From IMG/VR virus record IMGVR_UViG_3300024262_006558, positions 186,001-250,000 of that record: 64,000 bases of DNA; one strand, 5' to 3'. The translations under genes and the position numbers were made by a program. The notes under the pieces were generated by a model. The model searched no databases. It was not told the DNA's origin and was given only the letters and a program-made list of their open reading frames with translations. Below are positions 35,934 to 53,377 of this stretch, in pieces. How positions within the stretch are numbered: position 1 is the first letter of the stretch; each line of letters starts with the position of its first letter.

Positions 35934-36789
35934 ACTTCCCCATTTCATTAGCCAATTCTTCTCTGACATCCGTCATTCCATGCATGCTATGGAATCGGAA
36001 CCAGTTATTCTTTACTATTCTTATATAGTTTTCCTTTTCCATATAAGCAAACTCTTTAGCTAACAAACTTATATACCTTTCTGGGAAAAAAGTTTTAAAA
36101 TTAGCATGAGTTAACATGCTCCTATTATTTATTTTATTTTTTAATATCTTAATTAAATTATCAAATAAATATTTTTCTTGAGTTTTAAAAGAAAGAGTAA
36201 GAAGACTCCTGATATCTTTTGAAGTCAGACTCTCATTAACCGAGTTCCACTCCAAAAAAACATCTATTAATTCTTTGTATTTACTCTCATTGTAAGGGAT
36301 AAGTTTATCATCATTTTTGTTCATCTTATCAATAGCCGACGAAAATACGCGAACCACTTTATCCTTTAATGTGAGTTTCATGCCAAGTAAATGGATGCTT
36401 TTACTTACGCCAGTCTCTATATTTAATAAATCTTTATATTCACTAGCAATATGCTGAGCGCCATCTATATCACTATGAAGGATAGCCTTAATAAATAACT
36501 CAACCTTATCATCCCACAATAAACCAGTCTCCTCCTCATAAGTCGGAGTCCACATATTAACTAATTTAACAAAACCTTGCTTCTCCCATAAGAGAAGCAA
36601 GGTTTGTAAATTGGGTTTTATATTTAATTCGCTAGAAAACTCTAGTAAAAAATCTTCTGAAAACTGCTTTATAGCACTCACGCTCAACTGACTTAGGTCT
36701 ATTATATCAGAATTACATCTAATCATCTCTTGAGCCTGCTCAAACTCTCGACCCATACTAACCTCTATTCTTAAAATAACCTTTTCCAT
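35923..36789 (-). CDS. Hypothetical protein
   Basis: 288 aa ORF. Confidence 0.6.
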   Translation of the reverse strand: MEKVILRIEVSMGREFEQAQEMIRCNSDIIDLSQLSVSAIKQFSEDFLLEFSSELNIKPNLQTLLLLWEKQGFVKLVNMWTPTYEEETGLLWDDKVELFIKAILHSDIDGAQHIASEYKDLLNIETGVSKSIHLLGMKLTLKDKVVRVFSSAIDKMNKNDDKLIPYNESKYKELIDVFLEWNSVNESLTSKDIRSLLTLSFKTQEKYLFDNLIKILKNKINNRSMLTHANFKTFFPERYISLLAKEFAYMEKENYIRIVKNNWFRFHSMHGMTDVREELANEMGKSNE

Positions 36790-36858
36790 AAGAGCAAATA
36801 TATAGAAACTAAACTAAACTTTCAAAAGTCAAAGTTAAATACTATCTTTACTTAATAG

Positions 36859-37299
36859 ATGGGAAGAAAATTGTTTTATGTAAACGCTCCTAGTAATGCG
36901 GAGATAATGAACTGGCACAAGCAAGGTCAGATGCAAATAAAGATACCATCCAGGCCCGCTACGGACATCTCTCTTCTAACCGAGAAGATTGTATCAAAGG
37001 AAGATATGGAGAGCATGTACGCATGGGCATTTGGCTCAAACTGGAGAATGGAGATACAGTGGAAAGACTTATCGCTATTTGTTGGAACAAAAAGATCATT
37101 CTTCACTAAGAACATTGGATTGTTTGAAATAATAGAGGCGGAGTGGTGGTGGACGCTAAATGTCGTAAGCGAAAACAAAGACCTAATAAAGATAACGCAC
37201 CAAATCTGGACATATTTCAAAAATAAAGCATCACAACAATCAAACTACATAATCTCTAGGAAAAATTATGAGGAAACAGTTTTACATACAACCAAGTAA
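36859..37299 (+). CDS. MRKxFY-family protein
   Basis: MGRKLFYV. Confidence 0.7.
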   Translation: MGRKLFYVNAPSNAEIMNWHKQGQMQIKIPSRPATDISLLTEKIVSKEDMESMYAWAFGSNWRMEIQWKDLSLFVGTKRSFFTKNIGLFEIIEAEWWWTLNVVSENKDLIKITHQIWTYFKNKASQQSNYIISRKNYEETVLHTTK

Positions 37300-37729
37300 T
37301 TTAAGCTTCATAGCAAGAAGGCACACAGGTAATATGTACTCCCTGGAAAAGGATGTGAGAAACTTCTATGAAGATCATGTAACCTGGAAAGTAATAGACG
37401 TACTAATGTCTTGGGCGGCTCAAAACAAAGAATGGTACAAGATGGGGCATAATGAATTTAAAAAAGCTTTTCATTCTCACGCCAAACCAATTAACCACAT
37501 CCCTAAAAACGCCAGCGTAAATATAGGGCTCAAACAAGTCGAAACCGCTTATTTCTCATACTTGCTAAGCCCAAAAAGAATTAGCATAGAAGAAGAAAAG
37601 AAGTACTATATCACAAAGTCCCTGAAAAACGCAGAGCGAATTCGCGACCATATTTTTTTTAGGCAATTCTTTAGATATCCAAAACAAAAATCCTATATTT
37701 ACTCAAAATATATTAACTATGTCAAATAA
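37268..37729 (+). CDS. MRKxFY-family protein
   Basis: MRKQFYIQP. Confidence 0.7.
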   Translation: MRKQFYIQPSNLSFIARRHTGNMYSLEKDVRNFYEDHVTWKVIDVLMSWAAQNKEWYKMGHNEFKKAFHSHAKPINHIPKNASVNIGLKQVETAYFSYLLSPKRISIEEEKKYYITKSLKNAERIRDHIFFRQFFRYPKQKSYIYSKYINYVK

Positions 37730-37982
37730 AACCGAAGTATTTCAATATACCATAACAGGAATGAGCGAACTATCTAATCAGGTAAAAGATGTGTTCCTAT
37801 CCAATATGCTAAAACAAAATATAATTACCAATTCTCAATACGAAGAAATGATTAAGTATTCGGTAATAGCCGCTGAAGAAAAAATGTTAGGTAATATTTG
37901 GAAAAAGCTTTGGTCAAAAGACAAAACAACAACCAAATTAGTGGTGGTAAAAGTAATTCAAGAAATAGAAGAAGAATCATGA
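37719..37982 (+). CDS. Hypothetical protein (no MRKxFY motif)
   Basis: ORF track. Confidence 0.55.
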   Translation: MSNKTEVFQYTITGMSELSNQVKDVFLSNMLKQNIITNSQYEEMIKYSVIAAEEKMLGNIWKKLWSKDKTTTKLVVVKVIQEIEEES

Positions 37983-38284
37983 GAAGATTTATACAAAAAA
38001 ACAAGTTCCCATTTGTACTAATAGGAATAAATGTAGGTATATATTTTTTGTTCGGAGGGTTTTTTAGCCTATTCATAGCATTAGCAATAATAGGAATGAT
38101 AATCTGGAAAAAGTAAATATATGAACCCTGCGCTAATACTAATTATTTATACGTTTGCAATATTGTCTAATTTATTGCCCCTACTTAAACGTAACAACCT
38201 TAAAAAATTCTGGGTAAACTGGCATTCGACACTACTCGGATATTTCATGTTTATGTTTTCCGTTAGAATAGTATCTTACATATT

Positions 38285-38500
38285 TTGAGAAAACTGTTCT
38301 ACATAAGACAAGGAGGCAATGCTATACCATACTACATCACAAGAGCAAAAGAGTTAAACGCGATTATACTTGCTCACAGAAGAGGAGGGTCAAGAGTTAG
38401 AGCCGCTATGCTAAGCATATCCTTCTATAAAGCTAAAGATGAAGCAAGAAGAGATAATTATTCAGAATCATTAAAAATTCTTATGAAACATGGGCTCTAG
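38285..38500 (+). CDS. MRKxFY-family protein
   Basis: TTG start, MRKLFYIR. Confidence 0.65.
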   Translation: MRKLFYIRQGGNAIPYYITRAKELNAIILAHRRGGSRVRAAMLSISFYKAKDEARRDNYSESLKILMKHGL

Positions 38501-38717
38501 AAAACTATTCTACATAGGATCTAAAAAAGCTCCATCAAAAGAAACAAAGGTGTTCAAAAAGATTGTGTGCAACTGTTCAGAATGCCCATTAGTCTCCAGA
38601 ATCGCTATACCCCATAAAGGAATGCTAAATGAAATGTATAGATGCGAAGAACTAAACATCAATCTATATGCGGCTAAAAATACCATACACCCAGATTGTC
38701 CACTAGATAAAAAATGA
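38490..38717 (+). CDS. MRKxFY-family protein, Cys-rich (possible zinc binding)
   Basis: MGSRKLFYIG; CNCSECP...C...HPDCP. Confidence 0.7.
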   Translation: MGSRKLFYIGSKKAPSKETKVFKKIVCNCSECPLVSRIAIPHKGMLNEMYRCEELNINLYAAKNTIHPDCPLDKK

Positions 38718-39043
38718 GAAAGCAGTTTTATATTTCAAATGGGTGGAGTATATACCACATCATAGTAACAATAACTCAAGAAGGCGGGGGTCACGCCTTT
38801 GACTTGGAAGTGTATGCTCAAAATGAAAGTGGAGCAAGAAATAAAATATACAAAGAAGTGTTAGGAGTTTCCGATGGAGAAAAAGAAGGGGATACATTCG
38901 AATATAAAGGAATCACGTTCACGGACCCATGCCACATAAGTTTCAAAAAAGGACCGCTTAATAAATTGAGGAGCCCGCTAGATGCATCCTCTACTTCAGA
39001 CGAAAACTATTACCCTGGAGGTGAAGAATATGATATAAATTAA
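38714..39043 (+). CDS. MRKxFY-family protein
   Basis: MRKQFYISN. Confidence 0.7.
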   Translation: MRKQFYISNGWSIYHIIVTITQEGGGHAFDLEVYAQNESGARNKIYKEVLGVSDGEKEGDTFEYKGITFTDPCHISFKKGPLNKLRSPLDASSTSDENYYPGGEEYDIN

Positions 39044-39092
39044 TATGGAAAAGATTATTGACATTGTCCTCTAAATTCCGTATTTTTGCCGA

Positions 39093-39308
39093 GTGAGGAA
39101 ACTGTTCTACTATTCTATGTCATACAATATCAGAGTCGAAGTTAGACCCAAAAGAGGAGGCGTTCCAGAAAATATCATTTTCAAAAATGTAGAAGGAATA
39201 AACCCAGACGAAGCCATAAAGAACATTAAATCTACGGCTCTAGATATCGCAGAAGACCTAAAAGACTTCTGGGAATGTAGAGTAGTGGTTAAATACTTCA
39301 TAGTATGA
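39093..39308 (+). CDS. MRKxFY-family protein
   Basis: GTG start, MRKLFYYS; TATTTTTG promoter-like site immediately upstream. Confidence 0.65.
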   Translation: MRKLFYYSMSYNIRVEVRPKRGGVPENIIFKNVEGINPDEAIKNIKSTALDIAEDLKDFWECRVVVKYFIV

Positions 39309-39739
39309 GAAAGCAGTTCTATATATCCAATAAAGACAATAGGCTTACAAAGAATTCTTTCTTAGCGGTAAATAGAGCCTTCCTATCGGCTTCCGAGAAA
39401 TTCTATAAGAAAAAGAAAGAACTTCATGAGAAGTTTCCAGCCCTAGAAAAGAAATCTATGAAAGATATATTCAAATGGGCCTTCGCCAATAAAAAACAAG
39501 AGGTATACCTCTTCAATATGGACCAGTTTAGAACAACCTGGAATAATAAGTTTCCAAAATCTAAACTGTCTAAAGGTAAAGCTGGAGCCCTCTCCGAAGG
39601 AGAGATATCTTTTATAATTAGAGAGTACGTGAGGATTGGCGCCCTAGAGCCAAAGACTCACATAGAACAAGCAATCGATAAAACAATTAAAGTGTCATAC
39701 ATGACGCGCGAAATAATAAACCAATGGAAGAATACTTAA
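39305..39739 (+). CDS. MRKxFY-family protein
   Basis: MRKQFYISN. Confidence 0.7.
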   Translation: MRKQFYISNKDNRLTKNSFLAVNRAFLSASEKFYKKKKELHEKFPALEKKSMKDIFKWAFANKKQEVYLFNMDQFRTTWNNKFPKSKLSKGKAGALSEGEISFIIREYVRIGALEPKTHIEQAIDKTIKVSYMTREIINQWKNT

Positions 39740-40005
39740 TAACCACAGACAACGAACCCCACTACACATGCACCGTAAAAGAAAACGATGTTAAAAAGTT
39801 CACCCTTAAAAAAATTAAATCAGAATCTTTCCATGATGCTGGAGAAACCCTAATAACCATAAAAGATACTGGAGATGGAATTAAAGTAGGTAAACATAGT
39901 TATGAATACCATGAACTGCAAGAACTATACTGCATCCTTAAAGTGGTAATGGAACATAATGATTCAGAATTTGGAGGAGAAGTAAGTCTGTATAAAAAAC
40001 AATGA
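39724..40005 (+). CDS. Hypothetical protein (no MRKxFY motif)
   Basis: ORF track. Confidence 0.55.
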   Translation: MEEYLITTDNEPHYTCTVKENDVKKFTLKKIKSESFHDAGETLITIKDTGDGIKVGKHSYEYHELQELYCILKVVMEHNDSEFGGEVSLYKKQ

Positions 40006-40211
40006 GGAAGCTATTCTATATAAAGCCCTCTAAGAGAACTTTTAGCTTTAAAGCCGCTATGAGCTGGGATGAATATGGAAACCCTTTATTCGACTACCTT
40101 GAAACTTTAACGGGGTATTACACAAAGAAGGAAGCAAATAACATATTTCAAAAAAACATTAAAAGAACTTATTCATTAGACCCATTAGATTATTCAATAG
40201 AAGAAGTATGA
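40002..40211 (+). CDS. MRKxFY-family protein
   Basis: MRKLFYIKP. Confidence 0.7.
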   Translation: MRKLFYIKPSKRTFSFKAAMSWDEYGNPLFDYLETLTGYYTKKEANNIFQKNIKRTYSLDPLDYSIEEV

Positions 40212-40507
40212 GAAAACTGTTTTACATAGGACCAAATCCGTTAGCGTATAACATACACATGATATTCTATGTAGCAGATAACTCAGATTTTAGAAATCAT
40301 AATATAGTACATCAACATTGCTTTCCATTTACAACAATTTACTTGCTGGATAAAGTCATGGAAGAATGTAAACCTAAAGCTAAAGAGTTTGCAAGAGAGG
40401 TAGCTGGAGAATGCGGATTCACTCACTACACAATAGATATTTCAATTGGACTCGTAACATTAATTAAAAGCGTCACATTAAAAAGAGAAGAGATATTCAA
40501 GCCATGA
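40208..40507 (+). CDS. MRKxFY-family protein
   Basis: MRKLFYIGP. Confidence 0.7.
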   Translation: MRKLFYIGPNPLAYNIHMIFYVADNSDFRNHNIVHQHCFPFTTIYLLDKVMEECKPKAKEFAREVAGECGFTHYTIDISIGLVTLIKSVTLKREEIFKP

Positions 40508-40800
40508 GAAAACTTTTCTACATAGCGCCAAGATTTAGATTGTATGTGGCTCTAACTACAGATTATATATTCGACATTACAGATGATAGATACTATTTCT
40601 TATGCTACGGACCATTCAATAAAAAAGAAGCTACCGATATATCAATAAGAGAATTAGCTATGCATAAAGATTATATATTCCAAGAAGTGATGGAAGTTGA
40701 GGATTTAACCGATCTAGTTATTCCATATAAACCCTGCTTTTATAAATACCTACTTGGAGAAAGTGTAGAAAAAGCAATAAGCAATATTATATACCTATGA
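40504..40800 (+). CDS. MRKxFY-family protein
   Basis: MRKLFYIAP. Confidence 0.7.
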   Translation: MRKLFYIAPRFRLYVALTTDYIFDITDDRYYFLCYGPFNKKEATDISIRELAMHKDYIFQEVMEVEDLTDLVIPYKPCFYKYLLGESVEKAISNIIYL

Positions 40801-41186
40801 GAAAACAATTCTACATACCATTTACTAAACAAGTATACGATGTTGTATTTAAATGCGAAGGTTATGATGTGTTTATAGGAGGGCATCATGATTTTACAGC
40901 AATAGCTAGCGTAGAATCTCTCAATTGGAAAGATTTAGTAGAAAAACAAAACCACCTTAGCGAAATGCTCGGCTTCATTCCAGGCAATATAGAAATTACC
41001 GACTATTATCTGTACAGCATAAGAAACAAACATGGTGAAAAACTATGGGAAACAACTAGGCCAGATAAAAAACCTACACACCGCGCCTTGCGAATATTTA
41101 AAGAGTACTTGAGCATATTTTACTCACCATTTCTTTTGTTAGCCGTAGGAGCAGCTTATATTTGTAATAGATTTAATAAAAAATGA
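40797..41186 (+). CDS. MRKxFY-family protein with C-terminal TM segment
   Basis: MRKQFYIPF. Confidence 0.7.
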   Translation: MRKQFYIPFTKQVYDVVFKCEGYDVFIGGHHDFTAIASVESLNWKDLVEKQNHLSEMLGFIPGNIEITDYYLYSIRNKHGEKLWETTRPDKKPTHRALRIFKEYLSIFYSPFLLLAVGAAYICNRFNKK

Positions 41187-41455
41187 GAAAACAATTCTAC
41201 TTACAAACAACCGTACCCGTAGAATCGGCGGCTAAAGAATGGATTGAAAGGTGGTCTAAGAAAAACCCATATTTATCCATGGATTACAATGACTATGACC
41301 AGCTATTACAATTAGGCAAGTATATAGAACTAAGGTCTGGAGTAGCAAGCTGCTTAGCAACCCTTGAAGAAATAACGCACAGTTATATATTCCTTAAACT
41401 ACACATACACAAATGGAATAAAGAACAAATAACTATAAACGAAATTATAATTTAA
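41183..41455 (+). CDS. MRKxFY-family protein
   Basis: MRKQFYLQ. Confidence 0.7.
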   Translation: MRKQFYLQTTVPVESAAKEWIERWSKKNPYLSMDYNDYDQLLQLGKYIELRSGVASCLATLEEITHSYIFLKLHIHKWNKEQITINEIII

Positions 41456-41564
41456 CAACACTAGATAAACTATCCATTGCAATCACTAAATTTAACAACC
41501 TCATACAATATCCTAGTAGAAAAATATTAGAACTAGCTACTAAACTATGGAGCAAGTATATCCC

Positions 41565-41792
41565 ATGAGAAAACAATTCTACATATCACCGCCTGAAGTA
41601 AACTATTACTTCAATACCACAGTAAAAGATATGCATACGCATAATGAAAGTCTTACAAGCTATGAATCCATCACTATGTTAGATTTCCTGGGACAAAAAG
41701 AAAGAGCTCTCAAAAGAGCGGAGAAATTCGCCCCAACAGTATTTAGTTATACAATAGTAAAAATTGAACTAGCTCGATATGAAATTATATGA
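41565..41792 (+). CDS. MRKxFY-family protein
   Basis: MRKQFYISP from the internal ATG at 41565. Confidence 0.7.
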   Translation: MRKQFYISPPEVNYYFNTTVKDMHTHNESLTSYESITMLDFLGQKERALKRAEKFAPTVFSYTIVKIELARYEII

Positions 41793-42112
41793 GGAAACTA
41801 TTCTATATAGGTCCAAAGATAGGATACTCCATAATACAATGCGGATCATCTGAAAGAATAGCGGGAACCCCATTCTGTACCAGAACTATAAAATCATACA
41901 ATCAGTATTCTAGAAAAGAATTACTCAGTATGTTTGAAATAGAACTTGAAGCTGAACTATGGGAAAAGTTTGATGAACATCTCTTCATATTTGACTTTAC
42001 CACAATATTTGTTGAAGAATATCTCCTGCCAAAACCAAACAAAGTACTACAAATTAGAATATCCCACTTCACGGAAGATCGACCAAGAAAAGGAGTAACA
42101 ATAATAACATGA
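41789..42112 (+). CDS. MRKxFY-family protein
   Basis: MRKLFYIGP. Confidence 0.7.
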   Translation: MRKLFYIGPKIGYSIIQCGSSERIAGTPFCTRTIKSYNQYSRKELLSMFEIELEAELWEKFDEHLFIFDFTTIFVEEYLLPKPNKVLQIRISHFTEDRPRKGVTIIT

Positions 42113-42366
42113 GAAAACACTTCTATTATAGACCACCAAAATCTACATGGAGAGTAACCTTCAAACCCTTTATAATGATAGGGTATAGAGAAGAAATGTC
42201 TACAGAGTATATCTCTGGAGTATTCATGAATAAAAACAGAGCAATTGAATCTTACTTCCAAACATTACAACACAGAGGAATCAAAGAAGCTCTTATAACG
42301 GATATATATGCTATAGAAGTAAAAGGTAGACCAATAGTATTTAATTATGAAAACATTATAATTTGA
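42109..42366 (+). CDS. MRKxFY-family protein
   Basis: MRKHFYYRP. Confidence 0.7.
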   Translation: MRKHFYYRPPKSTWRVTFKPFIMIGYREEMSTEYISGVFMNKNRAIESYFQTLQHRGIKEALITDIYAIEVKGRPIVFNYENIII

Positions 42367-42617
42367 GAAAAAGATTTTACATATCACCAGCATATAAGAA
42401 GTATAAATACTCATTCATAGCCGAAAGCCCTAAAGCTACACCTAACAGACAAAAATTCCACGTAATCAGAGCATATGTGAATTCCGCATTCGGAAAAGAA
42501 ATCGCCGAATTAGCTGGAGCCAAAAAAATAAAACATCTCATAACAAAACTCAAAAAGAAAGATGAACGAGAAGGGAAGTTTAGAATTTATTACACAGAAT
42601 TTGTAGAAGTGACTTAA
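42363..42617 (+). CDS. MRKxFY-family protein
   Basis: TTG start, MRKRFYISP. Confidence 0.65.
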   Translation: MRKRFYISPAYKKYKYSFIAESPKATPNRQKFHVIRAYVNSAFGKEIAELAGAKKIKHLITKLKKKDEREGKFRIYYTEFVEVT

Positions 42618-42658
42618 AAACGCTATTTTTAAAAAGGGCGCTAAAGCCCTTTTTAAAA

Positions 42659-42949
42659 ATGAGAAAAAGATTCTACTTTATGCCGCACAAAGAAACTAAG
42701 GTGACGCTAACCTTTCTAGCTCAAGGGACAAACTTTAGGGGAGCCGTGGAAAATGTATATAAAAATATAGAAACCACGTTGCTTAGAAGAAATATAGTAG
42801 AACAAGCTAAGAGATATGCGGAAGCCAGCTCATACCTAAGGCCATGCTTTGTAATACACGACTACCTGGCCGACTGCAAATCTATGCTAGTGAATATTAA
42901 AGGCCCGCAAGGAGATATCATCTGGGAAAATGATATGCAAGAAATATGA
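42659..42949 (+). CDS. MRKxFY-family protein
   Basis: MRKRFYFMP. Confidence 0.7.
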   Translation: MRKRFYFMPHKETKVTLTFLAQGTNFRGAVENVYKNIETTLLRRNIVEQAKRYAEASSYLRPCFVIHDYLADCKSMLVNIKGPQGDIIWENDMQEI

Positions 42950-43149
42950 GAAAAGTATTCTACCTAGGAATTAGAAGATACACAATAATAGGAACCGTGC
43001 AAAAATATGACAATGGAGGATACTCAATGCACACAATGAAAAAAACCTACTTTGGACTACATATCACATCAGCTGACGTGTTTGAAAGATTTAGTGAAGA
43101 AGCAGAAGGAACACTAATACTTTCATCAGTAAAAATAATACCATTTTGA
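42946..43149 (+). CDS. MRKxFY-family protein
   Basis: MRKVFYLG. Confidence 0.7.
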   Translation: MRKVFYLGIRRYTIIGTVQKYDNGGYSMHTMKKTYFGLHITSADVFERFSEEAEGTLILSSVKIIPF

Positions 43150-43361
43150 GAAAAGTATTCTACATAGCCCCTCACAAAAAAGATCCAATGCATATTATTT
43201 ATAATACGCCATTCGAAGATCTACTGGCAATTAATATAGCAGACATATTAAAAACAAAAGATATAACAATAGAATTTGTGGAAAAACCCGAAGATCACCT
43301 TAGTAACGCGTACACAGTACACTACAAAGACGGAACCAGCGTACCACTTGAATGGATTTAA
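43146..43361 (+). CDS. MRKxFY-family protein
   Basis: TTG start, MRKVFYIAP. Confidence 0.65.
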   Translation: MRKVFYIAPHKKDPMHIIYNTPFEDLLAINIADILKTKDITIEFVEKPEDHLSNAYTVHYKDGTSVPLEWI

Positions 43362-43364
43362 TAT

Positions 43365-43682
43365 ATGAGAAAAGTATTCTACATAGCGCCCTCCTTCTCT
43401 GGATACGAATTATCCACCCCAGTACACATACACTCTAAAGTAGGATTCGTTTCTAACAGTCTCATAGGACGCTACGTAGGGCCTTCGATTGATTTAGATA
43501 AAGTACGAGCTGATTATAAAGAAAAAGTCCTTAAATACATACAACATAGGCGAGCAGAGGGGTGTGGGTTAACCTTGGGAGATCTTAATATTAATCTAGT
43601 TAGAAATGTTTGTGAATATTCATACAGTTTCGATTCTGTAATGATTTTTCTTAATGAGGACAAGTTGGTGTCTGAATTTTAG
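43365..43682 (+). CDS. MRKxFY-family protein
   Basis: MRKVFYIAP. Confidence 0.7.
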   Translation: MRKVFYIAPSFSGYELSTPVHIHSKVGFVSNSLIGRYVGPSIDLDKVRADYKEKVLKYIQHRRAEGCGLTLGDLNINLVRNVCEYSYSFDSVMIFLNEDKLVSEF

Positions 43683-44060
43683 ACCTAAAAATTTGGGGAA
43701 AAAATTTTAAGACCTCACTATTTGGATAAGTCGAAAAGAGGAGGGGGTGTTGTTTTTAGACATAGTGTTCCCTAAAGAAATCTTTCCTGGAGAAGTGCGT
43801 TTCTGGGTCAAAATAGATGGTGGGATTTTTTGGGAAAAAATTTGGTAGAAAATTTCTCTACGCACTGGGCCTCCCCACCACACCCCCCTGTTTAGGGGGT
43901 TAATTATTGATACGACCCTAAATAGACCCCCTAATTAGACCCCTTAAATACCACATTAGACCCCCTAACCGCTTGCTTAAGGGGCTTAAATAACCAAACC
44001 CCCTTACAGGGTTTGGATTCATTAGGGGCTTAATTAGACCCCTTAAGATTAGACCTCTAA
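43680..44060. repeat. Non-coding region with TAGACCCC iterated repeats and G/C runs
   Basis: TAGACCCC at 43923, 43936, 43957, 44035; variants at 43680 and 44050; opposing TWAGGGG elements. Confidence 0.75.
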
Positions 44061-44276
44061 AACACCGTCCTCTATATGTCCAAAGAATGGTGAAAGACCA
44101 TTATAAACATTACTGTCAAAGTTACGAGGGAATTCAATAGCTTTTACTTTGCCTATCTTTTTTACGTTCGCCTCTTTAGAGTATAAGCCGTCTACGAATT
44201 TAAAAACTTCACCTTTGGAGTTTTTAAAGTAAGGTGTATTGTTTCCTTTGTTGTCGTTAATTGCTGCAAATATCAT
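44049..44276 (-). CDS. Hypothetical protein behind repeat A
   Basis: ATG at 44276 just downstream of the minus-strand repeat copy. Confidence 0.55.
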   Translation of the reverse strand: MIFAAINDNKGNNTPYFKNSKGEVFKFVDGLYSKEANVKKIGKVKAIEFPRNFDSNVYNGLSPFFGHIEDGVLEV

Positions 44277-44327
44277 AATCCTTTGTTTTGATTCACCAAT
44301 ATATACCACGAGTGGGATATTATGTAC

Positions 44328-45095
44328 TTACTCATAGAAGTTCAATTTATTTTGTAGTGCTACTAACATGTTAATATCTTGTATTGGGGTCATTGTATTT
44401 ACGCTCTCTATTTCTTTTGTTGATATAGGTGTTTTGTTTCTTTTTATATCTACAATCATAATAGTATTATCTAAAAATGAATGAGATATATTTATGACGT
44501 CTATACGTTTGTCTTTAACTATTATTGTGTTACCAATAAATTCATAGACAGGTAGGATTCCAGTATTTACTTTTACAGTATTTTTATTCTTATAAAAGTT
44601 CTTTTTAAATCTTGTTAAGTTTGGCACGTTACAAGTCGCTCTTTTACATAAGTGAATTGATTTTTTAACGTTATCTAGTGAAATATCTTTTACAAAGACG
44701 TTTCTTAGTGGCATATCATTTACATATATGGCTATTTTGTCTCCATACATAAAAGCGTTTACAGTAACGTTATTAAAAACAAATGTAGTGTGTTTAGATT
44801 CTCTATGTATGTTTATGCGTTCGATTTGTTTTTTACTTCTATATTCTATTTCAGAATCAATTTTACTTTTTACATATTCTAGGCTTGTTCCGTCAACAGG
44901 TTTAGGTGAATAGCATCCTGTTTGAAATGTGTAGTTTTTATATTTACCAACACTAACGGAATAATAAGGGTTGTCGATTGAGTTAAGCTTTAACCCATCC
45001 TTGTCAGTTATAGACACGCTATTGGAGATAGGCTCATCGTTCATAAAAATATCTACACCTCTATATGTTTCAATTACTGTTTTTTGATTAATCAT
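44328..45095 (-). CDS. Hypothetical protein behind repeat A
   Basis: 255 aa; its stop abuts the next repeat copy. Confidence 0.6.
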   Translation of the reverse strand: MINQKTVIETYRGVDIFMNDEPISNSVSITDKDGLKLNSIDNPYYSVSVGKYKNYTFQTGCYSPKPVDGTSLEYVKSKIDSEIEYRSKKQIERINIHRESKHTTFVFNNVTVNAFMYGDKIAIYVNDMPLRNVFVKDISLDNVKKSIHLCKRATCNVPNLTRFKKNFYKNKNTVKVNTGILPVYEFIGNTIIVKDKRIDVINISHSFLDNTIMIVDIKRNKTPISTKEIESVNTMTPIQDINMLVALQNKLNFYE

Positions 45096-45472
45096 AATGC
45101 GTTTCTTTTTGATTCGATAATATATACGTTGGAGGGGATATTGTGTACTAAATAAGAAAAACCCTTAGTATGGGAGTACTAAGGGTTTTATAGCGAAAAT
45201 GAAAACAAAACTTTAGAAGTGATATCTAATTATAATTTTGAAGAAATAAGTTAATCAAGTATCTACGAAGTTTTATCATTTCATTTATATATACACTAAC
45301 GAAGTAATTTTAAATTTGTTGCCACATATGAAACATTTATATTTCTCTTAGTAATTCCGCACCTTCGTATACCATGATATTCAATACACTATAGGGTTGG
45401 AGCTTGTATCCTGGAAAGTACATAATGTCCCCGTGGTCGTATATATTGTTGAATCAAAAAAACATACATATT

Positions 45473-45853
45473 ATGAAAGCTCACATGGAAATCGCAAATA
45501 CAATTTTATCACAGTTAAAAACTGGACAACAAAGCAAAATTAGAATGATGCGTTGGGGTGCAACTGGTTTTATGGGAATGAAGAAAGAAGGCAAGCTTGG
45601 CACGCTTAGATTTAAAGTGAACGGTTTGAAGTTCAAAGGATTTGTTTATATCTCTTTGAATGGCTCAGATACTTACGACATTGAATTTGTGAAAGTTAAG
45701 AGACGTAAAGATGAAGAGCTTAGCAAATTATACGGAAGAACTAAGTTTGAAGAGTACACTGAAACGGTGAAAGAGATGAACGGTATCTATTGCGACCAAA
45801 TGAATGAGTTGATAGATGAATATGTAGAGAAACAAAGTAACTATGCGTTTTAG
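45473..45853 (+). CDS. Hypothetical phage protein
   Basis: ATG after repeat A; IANTILSQL..FKVNG..SDTYDIEF..IYCDQM. Confidence 0.65.
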   Translation: MKAHMEIANTILSQLKTGQQSKIRMMRWGATGFMGMKKEGKLGTLRFKVNGLKFKGFVYISLNGSDTYDIEFVKVKRRKDEELSKLYGRTKFEEYTETVKEMNGIYCDQMNELIDEYVEKQSNYAF

Positions 45854-45905
45854 TACATAGTTTCCCCTTGGGGGTATATATTATTGAATTTTAAAAGAAG
45901 ATATT

Positions 45906-46124
45906 ATGTCACTTATAAAAAATGCAAAGTATAAAGATAACACCACTTACAAGTATGGGACACTTACTTATACGGGTAAAAAGAAAGATATTAATTATGG
46001 CATGGGTTCTTTTGAAATGTCTCATTGTTTTGATTACGTAGATAACAACTTCCCAAAAGAGTTTGGAGTAACAAAGAAATGGCTTACAGAATCTTATATT
46101 AAAAATCATTTAACAGCTCTTTAG
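45906..46124 (+). CDS. Hypothetical protein
   Basis: Behind repeat A. Confidence 0.6.
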   Translation: MSLIKNAKYKDNTTYKYGTLTYTGKKKDINYGMGSFEMSHCFDYVDNNFPKEFGVTKKWLTESYIKNHLTAL

Positions 46125-46289
46125 TTAGAGCTGTTTTTTTATTTGTGTATCTCTGAATTTTTCCGCAACTGCGTAAACCTTATCAGATACAGAGGGAGAG
46201 ATTGAGGTCACAAAAGCTGAAAAGTAAACTTTCCTATAAGTACATAGTTTCCCCCTCGTGGTATATATTGGTGAATCAAATTTAAAGAC

Positions 46290-46529
46290 ATGAAAACCAT
46301 TAAAGATTATAAAGTAGATTTTAAAGTAGCCAATAGTGATTATGGAACTTTAACTATACCAAAAGGAACAAGTGTGACAAATCAAACAGCAATGGGAATT
46401 GATAAAAACTATCATTTTGTTAATGATTTTTCATGGGTGAAAAAACATGAATGCGGTACTATACAACATGGCTTATTGCATGATTTAAAACACTATGGAA
46501 TTAATGTCCCAAAAGAATATGTGTCTTAG
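46290..46529 (+). CDS. Hypothetical protein
   Basis: Behind repeat A; stop overlaps the next copy. Confidence 0.6.
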   Translation: MKTIKDYKVDFKVANSDYGTLTIPKGTSVTNQTAMGIDKNYHFVNDFSWVKKHECGTIQHGLLHDLKHYGINVPKEYVS

Positions 46530-46797
46530 TACATAGTTTCCCCCTCGTGGTATATATTGGTGAATCAAATTTAAAGACATGAATCAATTACTTAGTACTC
46601 CGAACAAAAGCAAACAAGCATCAAAGGTTTTACAGTTGATGGATAGAGATTATAGTTATGAAGAATCTTTAGCAATCATATTGAATGCTGACAAAAGGCT
46701 TAGTAAGTCGAAGTTAGAAACTGAATTAAATCTTTACATATAAAGTACACAGTTTCCCCTTGGGGGTATATATTGGTGAATCAAAACAAAAAAAGTT

Positions 46798-47130
46798 ATG
46801 TGTTATTATTCAGATGAATTAAAAAGAATTAGTACAAAGTCAGAATTTCCAGCTCAAGTAAAATTATCTGATGCGGAAGGGAATAAGACAAAATTCTTAA
46901 GTCTCAATAAAGAGAGTGCAAAGGTTTTAGTTGAGTGGTTAACTACTAACTTTTTAGAAGCACCCGCAACTTTAAACGAAGTTATTGAAGGTGGTAAAAT
47001 GGTTGCCGAATATGAAACGCAGGATTTTGATGATACAGAAATGTATTTAGTAGAAGTCTATCATTTTGAGGATTCTCTTTATTATATCGCAAATGGCGCA
47101 ATAATCAGAAGAGGCCCTATAAAGAAATAA
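46798..47130 (+). CDS. Hypothetical protein
   Basis: Behind repeat A. Confidence 0.6.
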   Translation: MCYYSDELKRISTKSEFPAQVKLSDAEGNKTKFLSLNKESAKVLVEWLTTNFLEAPATLNEVIEGGKMVAEYETQDFDDTEMYLVEVYHFEDSLYYIANGAIIRRGPIKK

Positions 47131-47519
47131 AGTACACAGTTTCCCCTTGGGGGTATATATTATCGAATCAAAAAAACATTAAGATTATGAAGACTAATAA
47201 AAGACAAGAGAGAAGAGACGTTTCAGAAAAGAAAAAAGAAACATTCAATCAAAGTGCTAAAAAAGGGATGACTCCTTACAAGAGCAGAAAGCCTAAGCAC
47301 AAGAATGAAGATTTATTTGCTCATCTTGATGCTGTCTTAAAATACTAAAAGTACCATAGCGATAGTTCAAATAAAGAGGTTTCTAACCTCTTTTTTTTGT
47401 TTACTTGCTTCTCTGGTTTTTTCCGCACATTCGTAAACCTTGATGTCCCCCTATGCTGTTTGACCAAAAGTACATAGTTTCCCCGTCACCGTATATATTA
47501 GCGAATCAAAACAAACATT

Positions 47520-48419
47520 ATGAAAACGGCTGATATTTACCAAAAAGTTACAGATAGAATTTTAGACCTAATAGATAATGGCGGTAAATTGCCATGGGAA
47601 AAGCCATGGGACTATAATGGTCAGCTACCTTGTAACTATGCAAGTAAGAAGCCTTACAGAGGTATTAATTTAATTATGACTGCATTCGATGAATTTAATA
47701 GTCCTTTTTACTTAACTGCAAATGAGATCAAAAAGCGTAAAGGCTCTTGGAGCGGTAAGGGTACTTTAATAGTATTTTGGAAGTTCTTAAAATTCAAAGA
47801 CAAAGATGATGAAAACAAGTTAAAGACTGTACCAATGTTAAAACATTACTATGTTTGGAATGAAGAACAAATAACGGGTATAGAGTTCAAGCATAACGAT
47901 AAGCATGAAATAAAAGATTTCGGCACAATCAATGAAGTAGAAGACATTTTTGCAAATATGCCTAATAAGCCTTCTATCATTCATGAAGAACAAGACAGAG
48001 CTTGTTATTCTCCAATTGCTGATACTGTAATGATGCCTTTAAAAGGTCAGTTCAAATGTTTAGAGTCTTATTACAAAACATTTGCGCATGAATTAATTCA
48101 TTCTACTGGTCATGAAGACAGATTAAATAGAGATGGTGTTGCAAACTTTGACAAATTCGGTTCACATCAATATTCTAAAGAAGAACTAGTTGCTGAAATG
48201 GGTGCATCTTTTATTATGGGTATGGCTGGATTAGAGTCAACTCAAGAAAATTCAGCATCTTATATTAAAAGCTGGAGAAACAAAATAGCTGGAGATAATA
48301 AGTTAATTATTCAAGCTGCTGGACAGGCTCAAAAAGCGGTGGACTATGTTTTGGGAACTTACAAGGATTACGCTGAAATTGAGAAGGAAAACGATAATTC
48401 AAAAGCAATGGCGGTTTAA
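47520..48419 (+). CDS. ardC: ArdC-like antirestriction ssDNA-binding protein with zincin domain
   Basis: IYQKVTDRI..PWEKPW..YRGIN; AHELIHSTGH..RLNR; YSKEELVAEMGA; NSASYIKSW; AAGQAQKAVDY. Confidence 0.85.
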   Translation: MKTADIYQKVTDRILDLIDNGGKLPWEKPWDYNGQLPCNYASKKPYRGINLIMTAFDEFNSPFYLTANEIKKRKGSWSGKGTLIVFWKFLKFKDKDDENKLKTVPMLKHYYVWNEEQITGIEFKHNDKHEIKDFGTINEVEDIFANMPNKPSIIHEEQDRACYSPIADTVMMPLKGQFKCLESYYKTFAHELIHSTGHEDRLNRDGVANFDKFGSHQYSKEELVAEMGASFIMGMAGLESTQENSASYIKSWRNKIAGDNKLIIQAAGQAQKAVDYVLGTYKDYAEIEKENDNSKAMAV

Positions 48420-48573
48420 TAAAAAGGGTGGATTATTTTCCACCTTTTTTATTGGGGAGAGTTCTCTGAAAAATTCCGCATTATCGTAAACCTTAACCTC
48501 GTAATACATACCAATAACAAAGTACATAATATCCCCTTCGCCGTATATATTGATGAATCTAAACAAAATCATC

Positions 48574-48894
48574 ATGAAAATAGAGTTAATAAACAAAAAA
48601 CAGCATAAAGTTCTAAAAGACATTCAATCTAATCACCCATTGTTAACATTTCAAAATGTAGGTTACGAATACATTAACAAAGACAAATTAAGCAATGATG
48701 ATTTAGAGGCTTTAGAAGTGATAAAAGGTATTTTAAAATCGCACGTTTGCGGTTTCTCAAAATTCTTCAATTTCAAAATAGATAGTGATAATGATATAGT
48801 TATGCGATTTGATTATAATTATGGTTATGATGGTGGTCAATACTTCATTGGGGTTGGATATCTAAAGTTAGATGAATTACTAAAGGGGTTTTAG
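48574..48894 (+). CDS. Hypothetical protein
   Basis: Behind repeat A. Confidence 0.6.
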   Translation: MKIELINKKQHKVLKDIQSNHPLLTFQNVGYEYINKDKLSNDDLEALEVIKGILKSHVCGFSKFFNFKIDSDNDIVMRFDYNYGYDGGQYFIGVGYLKLDELLKGF

Positions 48895-48971
48895 AAATAA
48901 GGTACATAATATCCCCCTCACCGTATATATTAGTGAATCAAAAGTTAAACAAAACCAAAACAAATACAATT

Positions 48972-49226
48972 ATGAAAAAGACTTATGCAATCATCGCAAT
49001 TTATCTATTAGCTGGTCTTGCAGGACACGCAGGAAACAGCACTGAGGTTACTGAGTTTATGACTCAAACGGTTAACGTCAACGGTCATGGGGTGAACAGT
49101 TCACTTCAAATGTGGCAAAGCTTATTAGCATTAGCTACACCCGTTATCCTCATAGGAGGTGCAACGCTAATCGGTTACGTAAAGTATCGTAATGCAGAAG
49201 CAAAAAAAGCTACACAATTAGGTTGA
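48972..49226 (+). CDS. Small membrane protein
   Basis: Signal/TM segment plus a second TM; behind repeat A. Confidence 0.6.
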   Translation: MKKTYAIIAIYLLAGLAGHAGNSTEVTEFMTQTVNVNGHGVNSSLQMWQSLLALATPVILIGGATLIGYVKYRNAEAKKATQLG

Positions 49227-49519
49227 AACCCTTCGGGGTTTTCACATTCAGACAAGGAAGGCGAATATGGCTGAATGCGTTAAGTCCGCGAAGTACGGCT
49301 AAGTATAACATAAGAAAAGAAATAAACTTAATTGAAAGCATAAAAAACCCATCTATTAAATTAGATGGGTTTTTTATTAGGGAGAGTTCTCTAAGTATTT
49401 CCGCAATATCGTAAACCTTAATCTCATGATACATATCCAGAAAAGCTGAAAAGTAAACTTTCCTATAAGTACATAGTTTCCCCATTACCGTATATATTGG
49501 TGAATCAGAATTTAAAGAG

Positions 49520-49996
49520 ATGAAAAAGATAGCATTAGTAGACGTATTCAATGGAGAGGGATATTCAGACCCTACGGTCAAAGTAGTAGAAGATTGTAGT
49601 CAAGAAATGTTTGACTCAATAGAGGAAATGCGTACTTCTTATGGGGGAGATGACTTCGAGCAAGTGGAGGGAGAGTTAGAAGATTATTCTGATACCGTTC
49701 ACATGGCTTTTAATGGGATAGGTCATTCAGAAGATGATAACGGAGCAATTCATGTTATTGAAATTCCTAAAGGGAGAGTTTTACTTTTGTTATTGCAACC
49801 GTGTGAATGTGAGGTTAAAGTTTTTGGAACGTATGATTCAAAAGAAGAAGCTGAAATTGCTATGAAAGAAGAGGTTTATAAGGATTCAAACGGATATGAT
49901 TCTGATGAAGTAGAAGAATGGGAAGAAGAAGAAATTACTGATAGCTTTTCAGCACATGGAAAAGATAGTTTTGATTTTTATAAAATCATTAGTTAG
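49520..49996 (+). CDS. Acidic hypothetical protein
   Basis: Very D/E-rich; behind repeat A. Confidence 0.65.
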   Translation: MKKIALVDVFNGEGYSDPTVKVVEDCSQEMFDSIEEMRTSYGGDDFEQVEGELEDYSDTVHMAFNGIGHSEDDNGAIHVIEIPKGRVLLLLLQPCECEVKVFGTYDSKEEAEIAMKEEVYKDSNGYDSDEVEEWEEEEITDSFSAHGKDSFDFYKIIS

Positions 49997-50046
49997 TACA
50001 TAGTTTCCCCATCACCGTATATATTGTTGAATCAAAAATTAAGAAC

Positions 50047-50289
50047 ATGGAATTATTAAATGCAAAAGAAATGGCAAATAAAGTAGTTATTGACGAAAGT
50101 TTTCTTAAAGAAATAACTAAAAAAATTAATGAAAACGCTAAAAGTGGACGAATAGCTATTAACTGCGGTTGGAGATGGTGTTCCGCACAAGCAAAGTCTC
50201 ACGCTATTAACGTTTTAAAAAGTAATGGATATGGTATTGGATTTAGTACAAATTGTCATGGTGTGGACAGGCTGATAGTGACTTGGTAA
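50047..50289 (+). CDS. Hypothetical protein
   Basis: Behind repeat A. Confidence 0.6.
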   Translation: MELLNAKEMANKVVIDESFLKEITKKINENAKSGRIAINCGWRWCSAQAKSHAINVLKSNGYGIGFSTNCHGVDRLIVTW

Positions 50290-50427
50290 CAATATATAAC
50301 TTAAAAATAAAGATAACTCTATAGGGTTATCTTTATTTTAGTTATCGGTACATAATATCCCCATCACCGTATATATTGGTGAATCGGACAAACAGATAGT
50401 TTGCCAGTAAACGAAACAAAATCAGTT

Positions 50428-50739: not shown

Positions 50740-50822
50740 GTACATAGTCTCCCCATCACCGTATATATTGTTGAATCGGACAAACAACAAGTTTGCCAGT
50801 AAACGAAAAACAAACAAACATT

Positions 50823-51035: not shown

Positions 51036-51212
51036 TTGTTTGATTCAAAGATTCGGGGACTTGTTCCCCTTTCTTTTTGTTTGTGCATCTCTGAGTTTTT
51101 CCGCATCTTCGTAAACCTAATCTTTTGTTAACCAGATCCAGGAAAGCTGATCTTTCCCATAAGTACATAATATCCCCATGGTCGTATATATTACCGAATC
51201 AAAAGTAAAAAC

Positions 51213-51545: not shown

Positions 51546-51590
51546 TTTCCCCCGTACCGTATATATTGGTGAATTTAAACAAAGCATATT

Positions 51591-53333: not shown

Positions 53334-53377
53334 TCTCCCCATGGTCGTATATATTGGTGAATCTAAATAAAGGAATC

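Follow-up and report, generated by a model that had tools for sequence, protein, structure and literature searches.

A shared N-terminal peptide as a probable address tag on otherwise unrelated proteins of a megaphage

Why should a run of small phage genes that have nothing else in common begin with the same few codons? This question was raised by an earlier note on a 64-kb window of DNA (64,000 nucleotides, here called the window), which described 20 tandem ORFs starting with Met-Arg-Lys-x-Phe-Tyr. The window is part of a 494-kb metagenomic contig of an uncultivated phage, here called phage A. We first tested whether the pattern is real. ORFs were found at all 20 positions listed in the note, and its observation holds. 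For 19 of the ORFs the start codon of the tag is the first start after the upstream stop, while the ORF at 41565 could also start at an ATG six codons earlier. In the six-frame translation of the window RK.FY occurred 20 times, every time at these N-termini between 36859 and 43682 and nowhere else. At the DNA level the pattern AGRAARNNNTTYTAY had 20 matches against 1.0 expected from shuffled sequences (maximum 4), and a 21-nt pattern had 15 matches against 0.03 expected. Start codons were 16 ATG, 3 TTG and 1 GTG, and 13 of 20 starts overlapped the upstream stop as NTGA.

The tagged ORFs all lie on the plus strand. ORF 1 (36859..37299, 146 aa) starts MG-RKLFYV, with one residue between Met and the tag, and ORF 2 (37268..37729, 153 aa) starts MRKQFYIQP. 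They are followed by an untagged 87-aa ORF (37719..37982, plus strand), a hydrophobic ORF (37898-38116) and an untagged small hydrophobic 55-aa ORF (38121..38288, plus strand), whose stop overlaps the next start as TTGA. ORF 3 (38285..38500, 71 aa) has a TTG start and reads (M)RKLFYIRQ. ORF 4 (38490..38717, 75 aa) starts MGS-RKLFYI and is Cys-rich, with four conserved Cys. ORF 5 (38714..39043, 109 aa) is acidic. A sigma-70-like promoter match (39058..39086, plus strand; TTGACA, 17 nt, TATTTT) ends 6 nt before the GTG start of ORF 6 (39093..39308, 71 aa, (M)RKLFYY). A like-spaced match is kept in the related phage B (see below), so the transcript may be leaderless. ORF 7 (39305..39739, 144 aa) is followed by an untagged 93-aa ORF (39724..40005, plus strand). 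Next come ORF 8 (40002..40211, 69 aa), ORF 9 (40208..40507, 99 aa), ORF 10 (40504..40800, 98 aa), ORF 11 (40797..41186, 129 aa, with a C-terminal hydrophobic segment), ORF 12 (41183..41455, 90 aa) and ORF 13 (41565..41792, 75 aa; the in-frame ATG at 41547 would add 6 residues). ORF 14 (41789..42112, 107 aa), ORF 15 (42109..42366, 85 aa) and ORF 16 (42363..42617, 84 aa, TTG start) precede a terminator-like G+C-rich hairpin flanked by A and T runs (42625..42660). The array ends with ORF 17 (42659..42949, 96 aa), ORF 18 (42946..43149, 67 aa), ORF 19 (43146..43361, 71 aa, TTG start) and ORF 20 (43365..43682, 105 aa).

Next, we asked whether the tag is confined to this array. It is not. The same contig holds a second array of 8 tagged genes and two tagged singletons, one encoding a stand-alone terminase-type ATPase and the other a 93-aa protein. 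Thus at least 30 proteins of phage A carry the tag. Across these 30 the motif extends further than the note had stated. Position 7 is hydrophobic in 90% (Ile in 16 of 30), position 8 is small, position 9 is Pro in 12 of 30, and the information falls to noise after position 10.

To test whether the tag is inherited with its genes, we compared phage A with two related phages, phage B (sequences L112, L117 and L120) and phage C (L119). Both keep the tag on the same genes, with 32-56% body identity and saturated synonymous sites. The tag was retained on the orthologues of 5 array genes, of the ATPase (MKKQFYT, MRKRFFLNP) and of the 93-aa gene. The orthologue of ORF 1 (L117:1340-1744) starts MR-RKRFYI and is 44% identical, and that of ORF 2 (L117:1741-2226) starts MRKAFYS. 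The orthologue of ORF 4 (L117:2413-2637) starts MSI-KKKFYI, with Arg replaced by Lys but the two-residue spacer kept. Orthologues of ORF 6 in L117 and L112 are 56-58% identical, and that of ORF 7 (L112:831-1298) starts MRKLFYF and is 44% identical. In contrast, about 33 neighbouring genes stay untagged, as does the orthologue of the untagged gene at 39724 (L112:1256-1528, 44% identical). Phage B also has a hydrophobic 92-aa ORF in the place of the small hydrophobic ORF at 38121.

We then asked whether selection acts on the peptide or on the nucleotides. dS between orthologues is saturated, yet R, K, F and Y are kept. Wobble identity in the tag codons was 19/29, near the expectation from codon bias alone. 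One Arg is encoded by CGT, Pro9 uses all four codons, and the replacements are conservative (R to K, Y to F). The note's claim that the constraint acts on the peptide is supported.

A common fold of the bodies had been named in the note as an outcome that would speak against its reading, and the bodies were compared with each other. Tagged-versus-tagged similarity was no higher than tagged-versus-control, and the best pairwise BLAST E value was 0.013. Profile comparison found only one weak pair, ORFs 1 and 2, which are probably paralogues (hhalign P = 0.004), and ORF 7 shares a WAF motif with them. With this correction, the bodies are unrelated by every test that we could run. One bearer of the tag has the predicted T4 gp17 ATPase fold (Foldseek E = 8e-11; Pfam Terminase_6N). 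Its AlphaFold model is confident (pLDDT 81.7), but residues 1-16 are below 50 and lack secondary structure. The model of the ORF 6 family is of low confidence (pLDDT 59) and shows strand-strand-helix-strand, again with residues 1-10 unstructured. Thus, the tag is predicted to lie in a floppy N-terminal tail.

What could such a tail be for? The second array gave a hint towards the head. Two adjacent tagged genes of this array are fragments of a T4-type (Gp23-type) major capsid protein, and one of them carries the tag directly ahead of the capsid protein's own N-terminal motif. However, 120 other Gp23-family capsid proteins have no such N-terminus, and no gp21-type prohead protease, scaffold or full-length capsid gene was found in the roughly 110 kb of the 494-kb contig that were read. 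The array starts 1 nt after a tRNA of a 10-tRNA cluster. Tagged proteins are mostly basic (median pI 9.0, against 6.7 for controls).

[quoted passage not shown] T4 internal proteins are unrelated small proteins that share only a 10-aa N-terminal targeting peptide (PMC3012670, PMC9026906). In T4 the N-terminal propeptides of head proteins and of internal proteins bind the core (PMC9026906). The T4 peptide, MKTYQEFIAE or MKTFKEF, is basic with two aromatic residues, of which residues 4 and 7 are decisive (PMC9026906). In both cases a peptide of about 10 aa at the extreme N-terminus, with Met, basic residue(s) and two aromatic residues within the first seven positions, is shared by small, mostly basic and otherwise unrelated proteins. 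These are encoded in variable loci of a phage with T4-type terminase and capsid genes, and the peptide is also present on head-protein N-termini, in phage A on that of a capsid-protein fragment. In both phages tagged genes lie on the same strand as a tRNA cluster, which the T4 ip genes flank at a distance of kilobases. This support is circumstantial. The tag (MRKxFYIxP) has no sequence similarity to the T4 peptide and is borne by 30 or more proteins rather than a handful. No conserved L/I-x-E or other fixed cleavage site follows it (13% of tagged proteins, against 32% of controls, have one in residues 8-30). A terminase-type ATPase is not expected inside a capsid, and one tagged protein has a C-terminal hydrophobic anchor.

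Other systems were compared as well. The promoter/stem-loop cassettes (PeSLs) that shuffle orphan genes in T4-type hyperplastic regions (PMC2839356, PMC4122927) are likewise short conserved modules at gene boundaries, in regions full of small orphan genes with signs of local copying, and true cassettes of this type occur in the 45-64 kb region of the window. However, PeSLs are non-coding and conserved as nucleotides, while the tag is coding, conserved as amino acids and only about 20 nt long, and its flanks are not conserved. Twin-arginine (Tat) and Sec signal peptides share an N-terminal, basic-x-Phe-containing motif, but no hydrophobic core and no signal-peptidase site follow the tag, and the sequence after it is polar. 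It is not a membrane-export signal. Encapsulin cargo-loading peptides direct unrelated cargo proteins into an HK97-fold shell. They are usually C-terminal and have a different sequence, and no encapsulin context is present here. Terminal recognition tags of AAA+ proteases (ClpXP or ClpAP N-terminal signals) are also disordered terminal peptides with basic and hydrophobic residues, and the phage encodes ClpP and an AAA ATPase, but no family-wide use of such tags is known in phages, and there is no evidence of turnover. We found no description of the present motif.

The interpretation in the note, a sorting, packaging or docking signal that delivers a diversified effector library such as virion-packaged anti-defence proteins, is thus partly supported. 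The peptide-level constraint and the unrelated bodies hold up, and the T4 analogy gains circumstantial support. No evidence shows that the proteins are packaged, injected or anti-defence, and the tagged terminase-like ATPase is not predicted by a pure packaged effector library, so that this part remains inference.

Several alternatives were considered. The one that survives best, although we consider it unlikely, is a docking motif for a hub that is not the capsid. This could be a chaperone (the basic-plus-hydrophobic core may resemble Hsp70 or trigger-factor binding preferences), a sliding clamp or a compartment import receptor, and the arrays would then encode many adaptors or inhibitors that share one entry point. 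The peptide-level selection, predicted exposed tail, unrelated bodies and gene-specific conservation apply equally to this reading, and the tagged ATPase fits a cytoplasmic partner better than a capsid interior. However, no candidate receptor was identified. A generic docking motif need not always be at the extreme N-terminus, yet all 30 or more copies are, and the tagged capsid-protein fragments point towards the head.

Less likely still is a translation start cassette, in which the first 6-9 codons or their nascent peptide would ensure start-site selection or early elongation on leaderless, tRNA-punctuated or NTGA-reinitiating messages, without need for a common partner of the mature proteins. 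No Shine-Dalgarno sequence lies upstream of any tagged gene, many starts are NTGA-coupled, TTG and GTG starts occur, and the position is strictly N-terminal. The first gene of array 2, 1 nt after a tRNA, and ORF 6, 6 nt after a conserved promoter match, would both be near-leaderless, and Ile7 is ATA in 15 of 16 cases, against 59% in the bodies. On the other hand, synonymous sites of the tag drift at about the neutral rate, Arg is once CGT, and the tolerated changes are the conservative amino-acid ones. One to five extra residues between Met and the tag are tolerated, and the 1- and 2-residue spacers are kept in the phage B orthologues. Untagged genes in the same coupled operon also lack a Shine-Dalgarno sequence, and the tagged ATPase gene has a conserved 26-nt leader. 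A purely nascent-peptide effect is not excluded by these points.

Two further readings are equally doubtful. The tag could be an N-terminal degradation tag, recognised by a host AAA+ protease or the phage's own ClpP and AAA ATPase, giving about 30 proteins a common short or timed lifetime. It is terminal, predicted to be disordered and basic-plus-aromatic, as unfoldase tags often are, and a ClpP homologue and an AAA ATPase lie within 10 kb of two tagged singletons, an arrangement conserved in phage C. However, this link is only proximity to 2 of 30 genes, the ClpP homologue may be the prohead protease, and no phage is known to use a family-wide degradation tag. Alternatively, the arrays could be an ordinary paralogue expansion in which only a structurally essential N-terminal strand stayed recognisable. 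The arrays are tandem, ORFs 1 and 2 are probably paralogues, and neighbouring tags share free-site nucleotides more than distant ones (p about 0.016; runs of CAA x3, AGA x2, GTA x3). Many short members look compatible with a strand-strand-helix-strand pattern, but this is our reading of the sequences plus one low-confidence model. Against this, the tag is also on a terminase-fold ATPase, on capsid-protein fragments and on a Cys-rich protein, which cannot share one ancestor. Similarity drops from 80% to background exactly at the edges of the tag, there is no excess body similarity over controls, and in both models the tag lies outside the fold.

Very unlikely is a recombination handle without peptide function, in which 18-21 nt would serve as microhomology for cassette shuffling (precedent: PMC2839356): neighbouring tags are more alike and the capsid C-terminal fragment begins exactly where the native capsid strand resembles the tag, as a microhomology junction would, but the nucleotides are not conserved where the code allows change and conservation across saturated divergence requires selection on the amino acids, so that this mechanism probably explains how the arrays grow, not why the tag is kept.

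In summary, our best explanation is that the motif [M][0-5 aa]-(R/K)-K-x-F-(Y/F)-hydrophobic-small-(P/Y) is a portable N-terminal tag, read as a peptide and not as RNA, that marks a defined subset of proteins of this megaphage lineage for one shared interaction. It sits in a predicted flexible tail ahead of unrelated folded bodies, as a short linear docking motif does. The analysis itself establishes that the tag exists and is enriched, that it is conserved gene by gene across three phages, selected at the peptide level and placed on non-homologous proteins, and that it is predicted to be disordered and exposed. That one partner recognises it, that this partner is part of the procapsid, and that the cargo is packaged or injected are inferences. 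We consider a peptide tag read by one common partner likely, whereas the full head-targeting mechanism is only tentative, although the assembling head is in our view the most likely destination. The tag would then be a functional counterpart of the T4 capsid-targeting sequence, which attaches diverse small internal proteins, and head proteins, to the prohead core. On this reading the two arrays would be fast-evolving cargo loci whose members are loaded into the virion, and new members would arise by copying or recombining the roughly 20-nt 5' module onto new bodies.

The region from 36000 to 44500 of the window was first listed for open reading frames, which revealed a head-to-tail run of 24 plus-strand ORFs. 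Twenty of these begin with M, MG or MGS followed by RKxFY. In the six-frame translation of the whole 64-kb window, RK.FY occurs 20 times, and all 20 occurrences are at these N-termini. At the DNA level, AGRAARNNNTTYTAY had 20 matches against 1.0 expected from dinucleotide-preserving shuffles, with every copy in frame at a start and none elsewhere. The 21-nt pattern that includes the ATG had 15 matches against 0.03 expected. For 19 of the 20 genes the start codon of the tag is the first start codon of the ORF. Thirteen starts overlap the preceding stop as NTGA, three starts are TTG and one is GTG. No Shine-Dalgarno sequence precedes any of them. Thus the observation of the earlier note, a tandem array of 20 small proteins sharing this N-terminal tag, was confirmed, but the motif is longer than the note had described. 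Position 7 is hydrophobic in 90% of cases, position 8 is small, position 9 is Pro or Tyr and position 10 is N, K, P or S, after which the information content falls to sampling noise. The tagged genes (36859-43682) also use codons differently from the long genes of the window (TTC 49% versus 32%, TAC 44% versus 30%, GTA 53% versus 31%, CCA 68% versus 49%).

The IMG/VR record UViG 3300024262_006558, of which the window covers bases 186001-250000, is the first 388.6 kb of JGI contig Ga0210003_1000004 (494,080 bp). The window and the other stretches read encode thymidylate synthase, NAD-salvage enzymes and an ArdC-like protein, tRNA synthetases and RNA-repair enzymes, a ClpP homologue, homing endonucleases and at least 10 tRNAs. 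Candidate counter-defence and NAD-salvage genes lie at 14434-16683 (minus), 21645-23162, 24933-26747 and 47520-48419. They comprise a 749-aa protein that combines a nucleotidyltransferase, DUF3008/DUF5661 and an Acb1-like 2H phosphoesterase, a nicotinate/nicotinamide phosphoribosyltransferase, a glutamine-dependent NAD synthetase and an ArdC-like anti-restriction protein. This is a very large phage, here called phage A, with no close cultured relative; megablast of the array against 50,697 phage records gave no match. Its terminase ATPase is 27% identical to those of T4-like phages.

Outside the window, three more sets of tagged genes were found on the same contig. A second array of eight tagged genes lies at 12462-14504 (minus strand) of the stretch L004, and most of these share a longer version of the motif, RKxFY(F/H/V)(A/G)YN. 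A tagged 239-aa protein, starting MRKRFYIKPD, is encoded at 1583-2299 of the stretch L090. It matches Pfam Terminase_6N, and its AlphaFold model best matches the T4 gp17 ATPase domain (E = 8e-11). A tagged 93-aa protein is encoded at 14411-14692 (minus strand) of the stretch L102. This makes 30 tagged genes in about 110 kb read, and a relaxed scan of the same sequence found no further variants. A single-tag DNA pattern in IMG/VR gave, apart from four stretches of this contig, only single matches, mostly without a long ORF.

Next, relatives were searched. A two-tag DNA pattern found only this contig in IMG/VR. In metagenomes it found this contig, ten chance hits and two true relatives, the short contigs L117 and L112 from other samples, which are syntenic with the start of array 1 and are here called phage B. 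Five tagged genes have orthologues there at 32-56% identity. All five keep the tag, once as KK instead of RK, and the one- and two-residue spacers after Met are also kept. The untagged gene 39724 is untagged there too. An exhaustive HMMER search with the tagged ATPase found only two close relatives among 1.8 billion representatives. One is 46% identical, starts MRKRFFLNP and comes from a 36-kb Logan contig (L119, L123), here called phage C. The other is 33% identical, starts MKKQFYT and comes from the samples that yielded the phage B contigs (L120-L122). More distant terminase ATPases lack the motif. In phage C the 93-aa gene is also tagged, whereas the other roughly 33 genes in 22 kb are not. 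Tag status is therefore a stable, gene-specific character across three lineages. In all three phages the terminase-type ATPase domain is a stand-alone gene of about 240 aa (L090:474-2302, equal to L102:8892-10720, and L119:2174-2920), flanked by genes on the opposite strand and set among RNA-repair and tRNA-synthetase genes. Phage A alone has a GIY-YIG/NUMOD homing endonuclease inserted just upstream, and the nuclease half of the terminase was not seen in the sequence read.

Word-indexed protein searches with the tagged ATPase and with ORF 39305 returned only self hits. One reason is that gene callers misplace these starts. The public gene calls for the phage B contig (L118, identical to L112) start two tagged genes at downstream ATGs and so miss the tag (661 instead of 619; 885 instead of 831). 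Database searches by N-terminal motif will therefore under-count this family. Searches of IMG/VR with flanking genes and with the capsid fragments described below likewise found only the contig itself, and exact-protein look-ups for two small proteins found none on record. Pfam, PHROGs and NCBIfam gave nothing for the 20 array-1 proteins, a profile of the Trp-rich family found nothing below E = 0.36 among PDB sequences, and Rfam found no family in the window.

We then asked whether selection acts on the peptide or on the nucleotides. Between orthologues dS is saturated while dN is 0.34-0.81. The bodies are therefore real proteins under purifying selection, and the comparison spans long divergence. 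Wobble positions of the conserved R, K, F and Y codons are identical in 19 of 29 orthologue comparisons, close to what codon bias alone predicts. Within phage A one Arg is CGT, Pro9 uses all four codons and the x codon varies freely. The only amino-acid changes seen are R to K and Y to F. Ile7, as a mild oddity, is ATA in 15 of 16 cases, against 59% in the bodies. Selection therefore acts on the peptide, and the synonymous-site conservation and frame-independent position of an RNA-level start-region element (translational operator or downstream-box type) were not observed. A nascent-peptide effect on translation is not excluded by this argument.

The relatedness of the bodies was tested in several ways. 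All-against-all BLAST gave nothing better than E = 0.013. With phmmer, tagged-versus-tagged pairs scored no better than tagged proteins versus 19 untagged small proteins of the same window. Profile-profile comparison of orthologue pairs linked only 36859 with 37268 (P = 0.004), and 39305 shares a short WAF motif with them. The bearers also include a terminase-fold ATPase, a Cys-rich protein, a protein with a C-terminal hydrophobic anchor and capsid-protein fragments. A single ancestry is therefore excluded for the set as a whole. Several of the 67-110-aa members could still share a small strand-strand-helix-strand fold, although the one model obtained for such a member is of low confidence (pLDDT 59).

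To see where the tag sits in the protein, the ATPase was modelled from a 20-sequence alignment (pLDDT 81.7, pTM 0.78). Residues 1-16 have pLDDT below 50 and no secondary structure, and the predicted ATPase fold starts near residue 24. In the low-confidence model of the 39093 family, residues 1-10 are likewise unstructured ahead of the first strand. In these models the tag behaves as an exposed linear motif, not as part of a fold. A Tat, Sec or lipoprotein signal peptide was ruled out, since positions 8-13 are polar (G, S, N, K, P) and neither a hydrophobic core of at least 10 residues nor a cleavage site follows the basic N-region. Only the untagged lipoprotein-like ORF at 35445 has such a core.

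Neighbouring tags in array 1 share more nucleotides at free sites than distant ones (p about 0.016). The x codons run CAA three times, AGA twice and GTA three times, and identity falls to background (0.31) immediately on both sides of the tag. In array 2, five genes share a 10-15-residue N-terminal module. The capsid C-terminal fragment b12876 begins exactly where the native capsid strand (DKHFYVAGYKG in cyanophage S-MbCM6) resembles the tag. Together these data suggest that the 5' module is copied or recombined onto new bodies, but they leave open that the tag itself derives from that capsid strand. The conserved non-coding promoter plus stem-loop of a PeSL-type shuffling cassette does not flank the tagged genes. 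Such elements were instead seen elsewhere in the window. Between 44298 and 63758 there are 32 copies (30 on the plus strand, 2 on the minus strand) of a roughly 40-nt element, GTACA(T/C)A-R-T-N-TCCCC-N6-GTATATATT(GGTGAATC), each 10-25 nt upstream of a start codon, with 0 copies expected by chance. It is probably a phage-specific promoter driving about 30 one-gene units of small orphan genes. It is absent upstream of the tagged array (36-44 kb, plus strand). A second repeat family at 45342-59897, TTCTCTGA-N-TTTTTCCGCA-NN-T-N-CGTAAACC (7 or more copies), follows terminator-like hairpins and precedes the promoter element. Together they resemble the promoter/stem-loop shuffling cassettes of T4-type hyperplastic regions (PMC2839356). 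Just after the tagged array, a 370-nt non-coding, G+C-richer stretch (43683-44060) holds five direct copies of TTAGACCCC(T)TAA, several inverted copies (TTAAGGGG) and A/T-G runs. It looks iteron-like and may be an origin or a cluster of protein-binding sites.

Two tagged starts are close to upstream elements. A TTGACA, 17 nt, TAnnnT promoter match (39058-39092, and L117:2655-2710 in phage B) ends 6 nt before the GTG start of gene 39093 and of its phage B orthologue, which would imply a leaderless GTG-initiated message. On the stretch L110 (774-858, minus strand, and 2101-3895), tRNA-Leu(TAG) ends 1 nt before the ATG of the first gene of the second tagged array, downstream of a cluster of 10 tRNA genes. 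Here tRNA processing would leave an essentially leaderless mRNA.

A connection to the capsid was found in array 2, where two adjacent tagged genes (L004:12658-13397, minus strand) are pieces of a Gp23-family major capsid protein, with the middle roughly 200-300 residues missing. L004:12948-13397 (149 aa) has the tag, then the capsid protein's N-terminal L-x-E-K-W-x-P-x-L-E-type motif, then the RR...V-x-P-M-x-G-P-x-G segment, as seen in the alignment. L004:12658-12876 (72 aa) is the C-terminal 66 residues. Pfam Gp23 matched the two with E = 4.1e-5 (0.8 bit under the curated cut-off) and E = 0.008, on collinear parts of the profile, and PHROGs returned 'major head protein'. Matches by tblastn were found in 290 and 71 phage records, including capsid or vertex proteins of cyanophages and Rhodothermus phage RM378, and Lak megaphage records. 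BLASTP against three capsid proteins gave E = 1e-8 to 1e-4, while the 19 controls never fell below 0.026. A third gene, L004:13914-14156, matches the spine-helix motif only weakly (E = 0.005). The two pieces may be a remnant, a decoy or an assembly factor. Array 2 as one shattered, collinear capsid gene was rejected, since only two fragments are significant and the weak matches of the others are not distinguishable from controls. A split intein was also rejected, because too few residues lie before the homologous segment. The tag as the element's footprint or a homing-endonuclease target was rejected as well, as the flanks are not conserved and the tag is kept in phage C, which lacks the endonuclease. 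A protein search for the full-length capsid protein of this phage was swamped by 5,869 capsid proteins and did not show it; of the capsid protein, only the fragments are seen here with the tag. Among 120 other Gp23-family capsid proteins none has the tag.

In T4, internal proteins are diverse proteins that share only a capsid-targeting sequence (CTS), which attaches them to the scaffolding core (PMC3012670). Its first 10 residues suffice, residues 4 and 7 are decisive, and the gp21 protease removes it after L/I-x-E. Head proteins also carry N-terminal propeptides with affinity for the core (PMC9026906). Read directly from the T4 genes, the peptides are MKTYQEFIAE and MKTFKEF, and the ip genes flank the tRNA cluster on one strand, kilobases from it. 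The present system matches T4 in architecture. A short N-terminal peptide with basic and aromatic residues is shared by diverse, mostly basic small proteins (median pI 9.0 against 6.7), the arrays are variable and one of them starts 1 nt after a tRNA of a 10-tRNA cluster, and the tag occurs on a capsid-protein N-terminus. The gp17-type ATPase and the Gp23-family fragments place the phage in the T4-type head and packaging lineage. In contrast, the sequence is unrelated to the T4 peptide, with only the composition (basic plus two aromatic residues) being similar, there are many more bearers, and the tag is also on a terminase-type ATPase. The protease site is absent as well: [LI]xE occurs in residues 8-30 of 13% of tagged proteins against 32% of controls, with no fixed position and no Glu-enriched column. 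In the about 110 of 494 kb read, a ClpP-family protease but no gp21 homologue was seen. We therefore regard the tag as working like a CTS, not as a member of that family, and the proposal of the earlier note, a sorting, packaging or docking signal by analogy to T4 internal proteins, is partly supported. While the tag, its retention on orthologues and the selection on its residues follow directly from the sequences, recognition by a common partner, targeting to the head and packaging are inferred. Head targeting itself is put forward only tentatively, whereas the broader statement that the tag is a peptide read by one common partner appears likely.

Among the alternatives, docking to another hub comes first. 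A translation start cassette is opposed at the RNA level by the drift of synonymous sites, but not as a nascent-peptide effect. A degradation tag follows, and a paralogue family is excluded for the set as a whole, although not among some short members. A recombination handle is the weakest, since selection acts on the peptide.

Searches of curated families and of the literature found no match to the motif and no paper describing it; the closest known system is that of the T4 CTS and internal proteins, from which this one differs as set out here. There is also a real, though small, chance that it is a targeting system of a new kind. In this view, megaphages of this lineage would use a genome-wide N-terminal sorting code of their own, in which one pentapeptide marks about 5-10% of the proteome, including a stand-alone terminase ATPase, capsid-protein pieces and two diversifying cargo arrays. 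The marked proteins would be directed to a dedicated receptor that is not the T4-type scaffold route, such as a new loading, import or reassembly machine. This would be a phage-encoded protein-targeting system with no described counterpart, but we consider it unlikely on present evidence.

If the tag is an address label, then a five-residue pattern lets anyone read, from sequence alone, which proteins a huge uncultivated phage sends to one destination. If that destination is the virion, the pattern reveals the repertoire of proteins delivered into the host with the DNA, which are prime candidates for anti-defence and takeover functions. It would show that the T4 principle of one short targeting peptide on many unrelated cargoes was reinvented, or diverged beyond recognition, and was scaled up roughly tenfold in megaphages. 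It would also give a ready-made handle for loading foreign proteins into large capsids. Even if the function differs, the system is a clean natural example of a short linear motif under strong purifying selection on fast-evolving orphan genes, and the arrays suggest how such gene sets grow, by copying a 20-nt 5' module.
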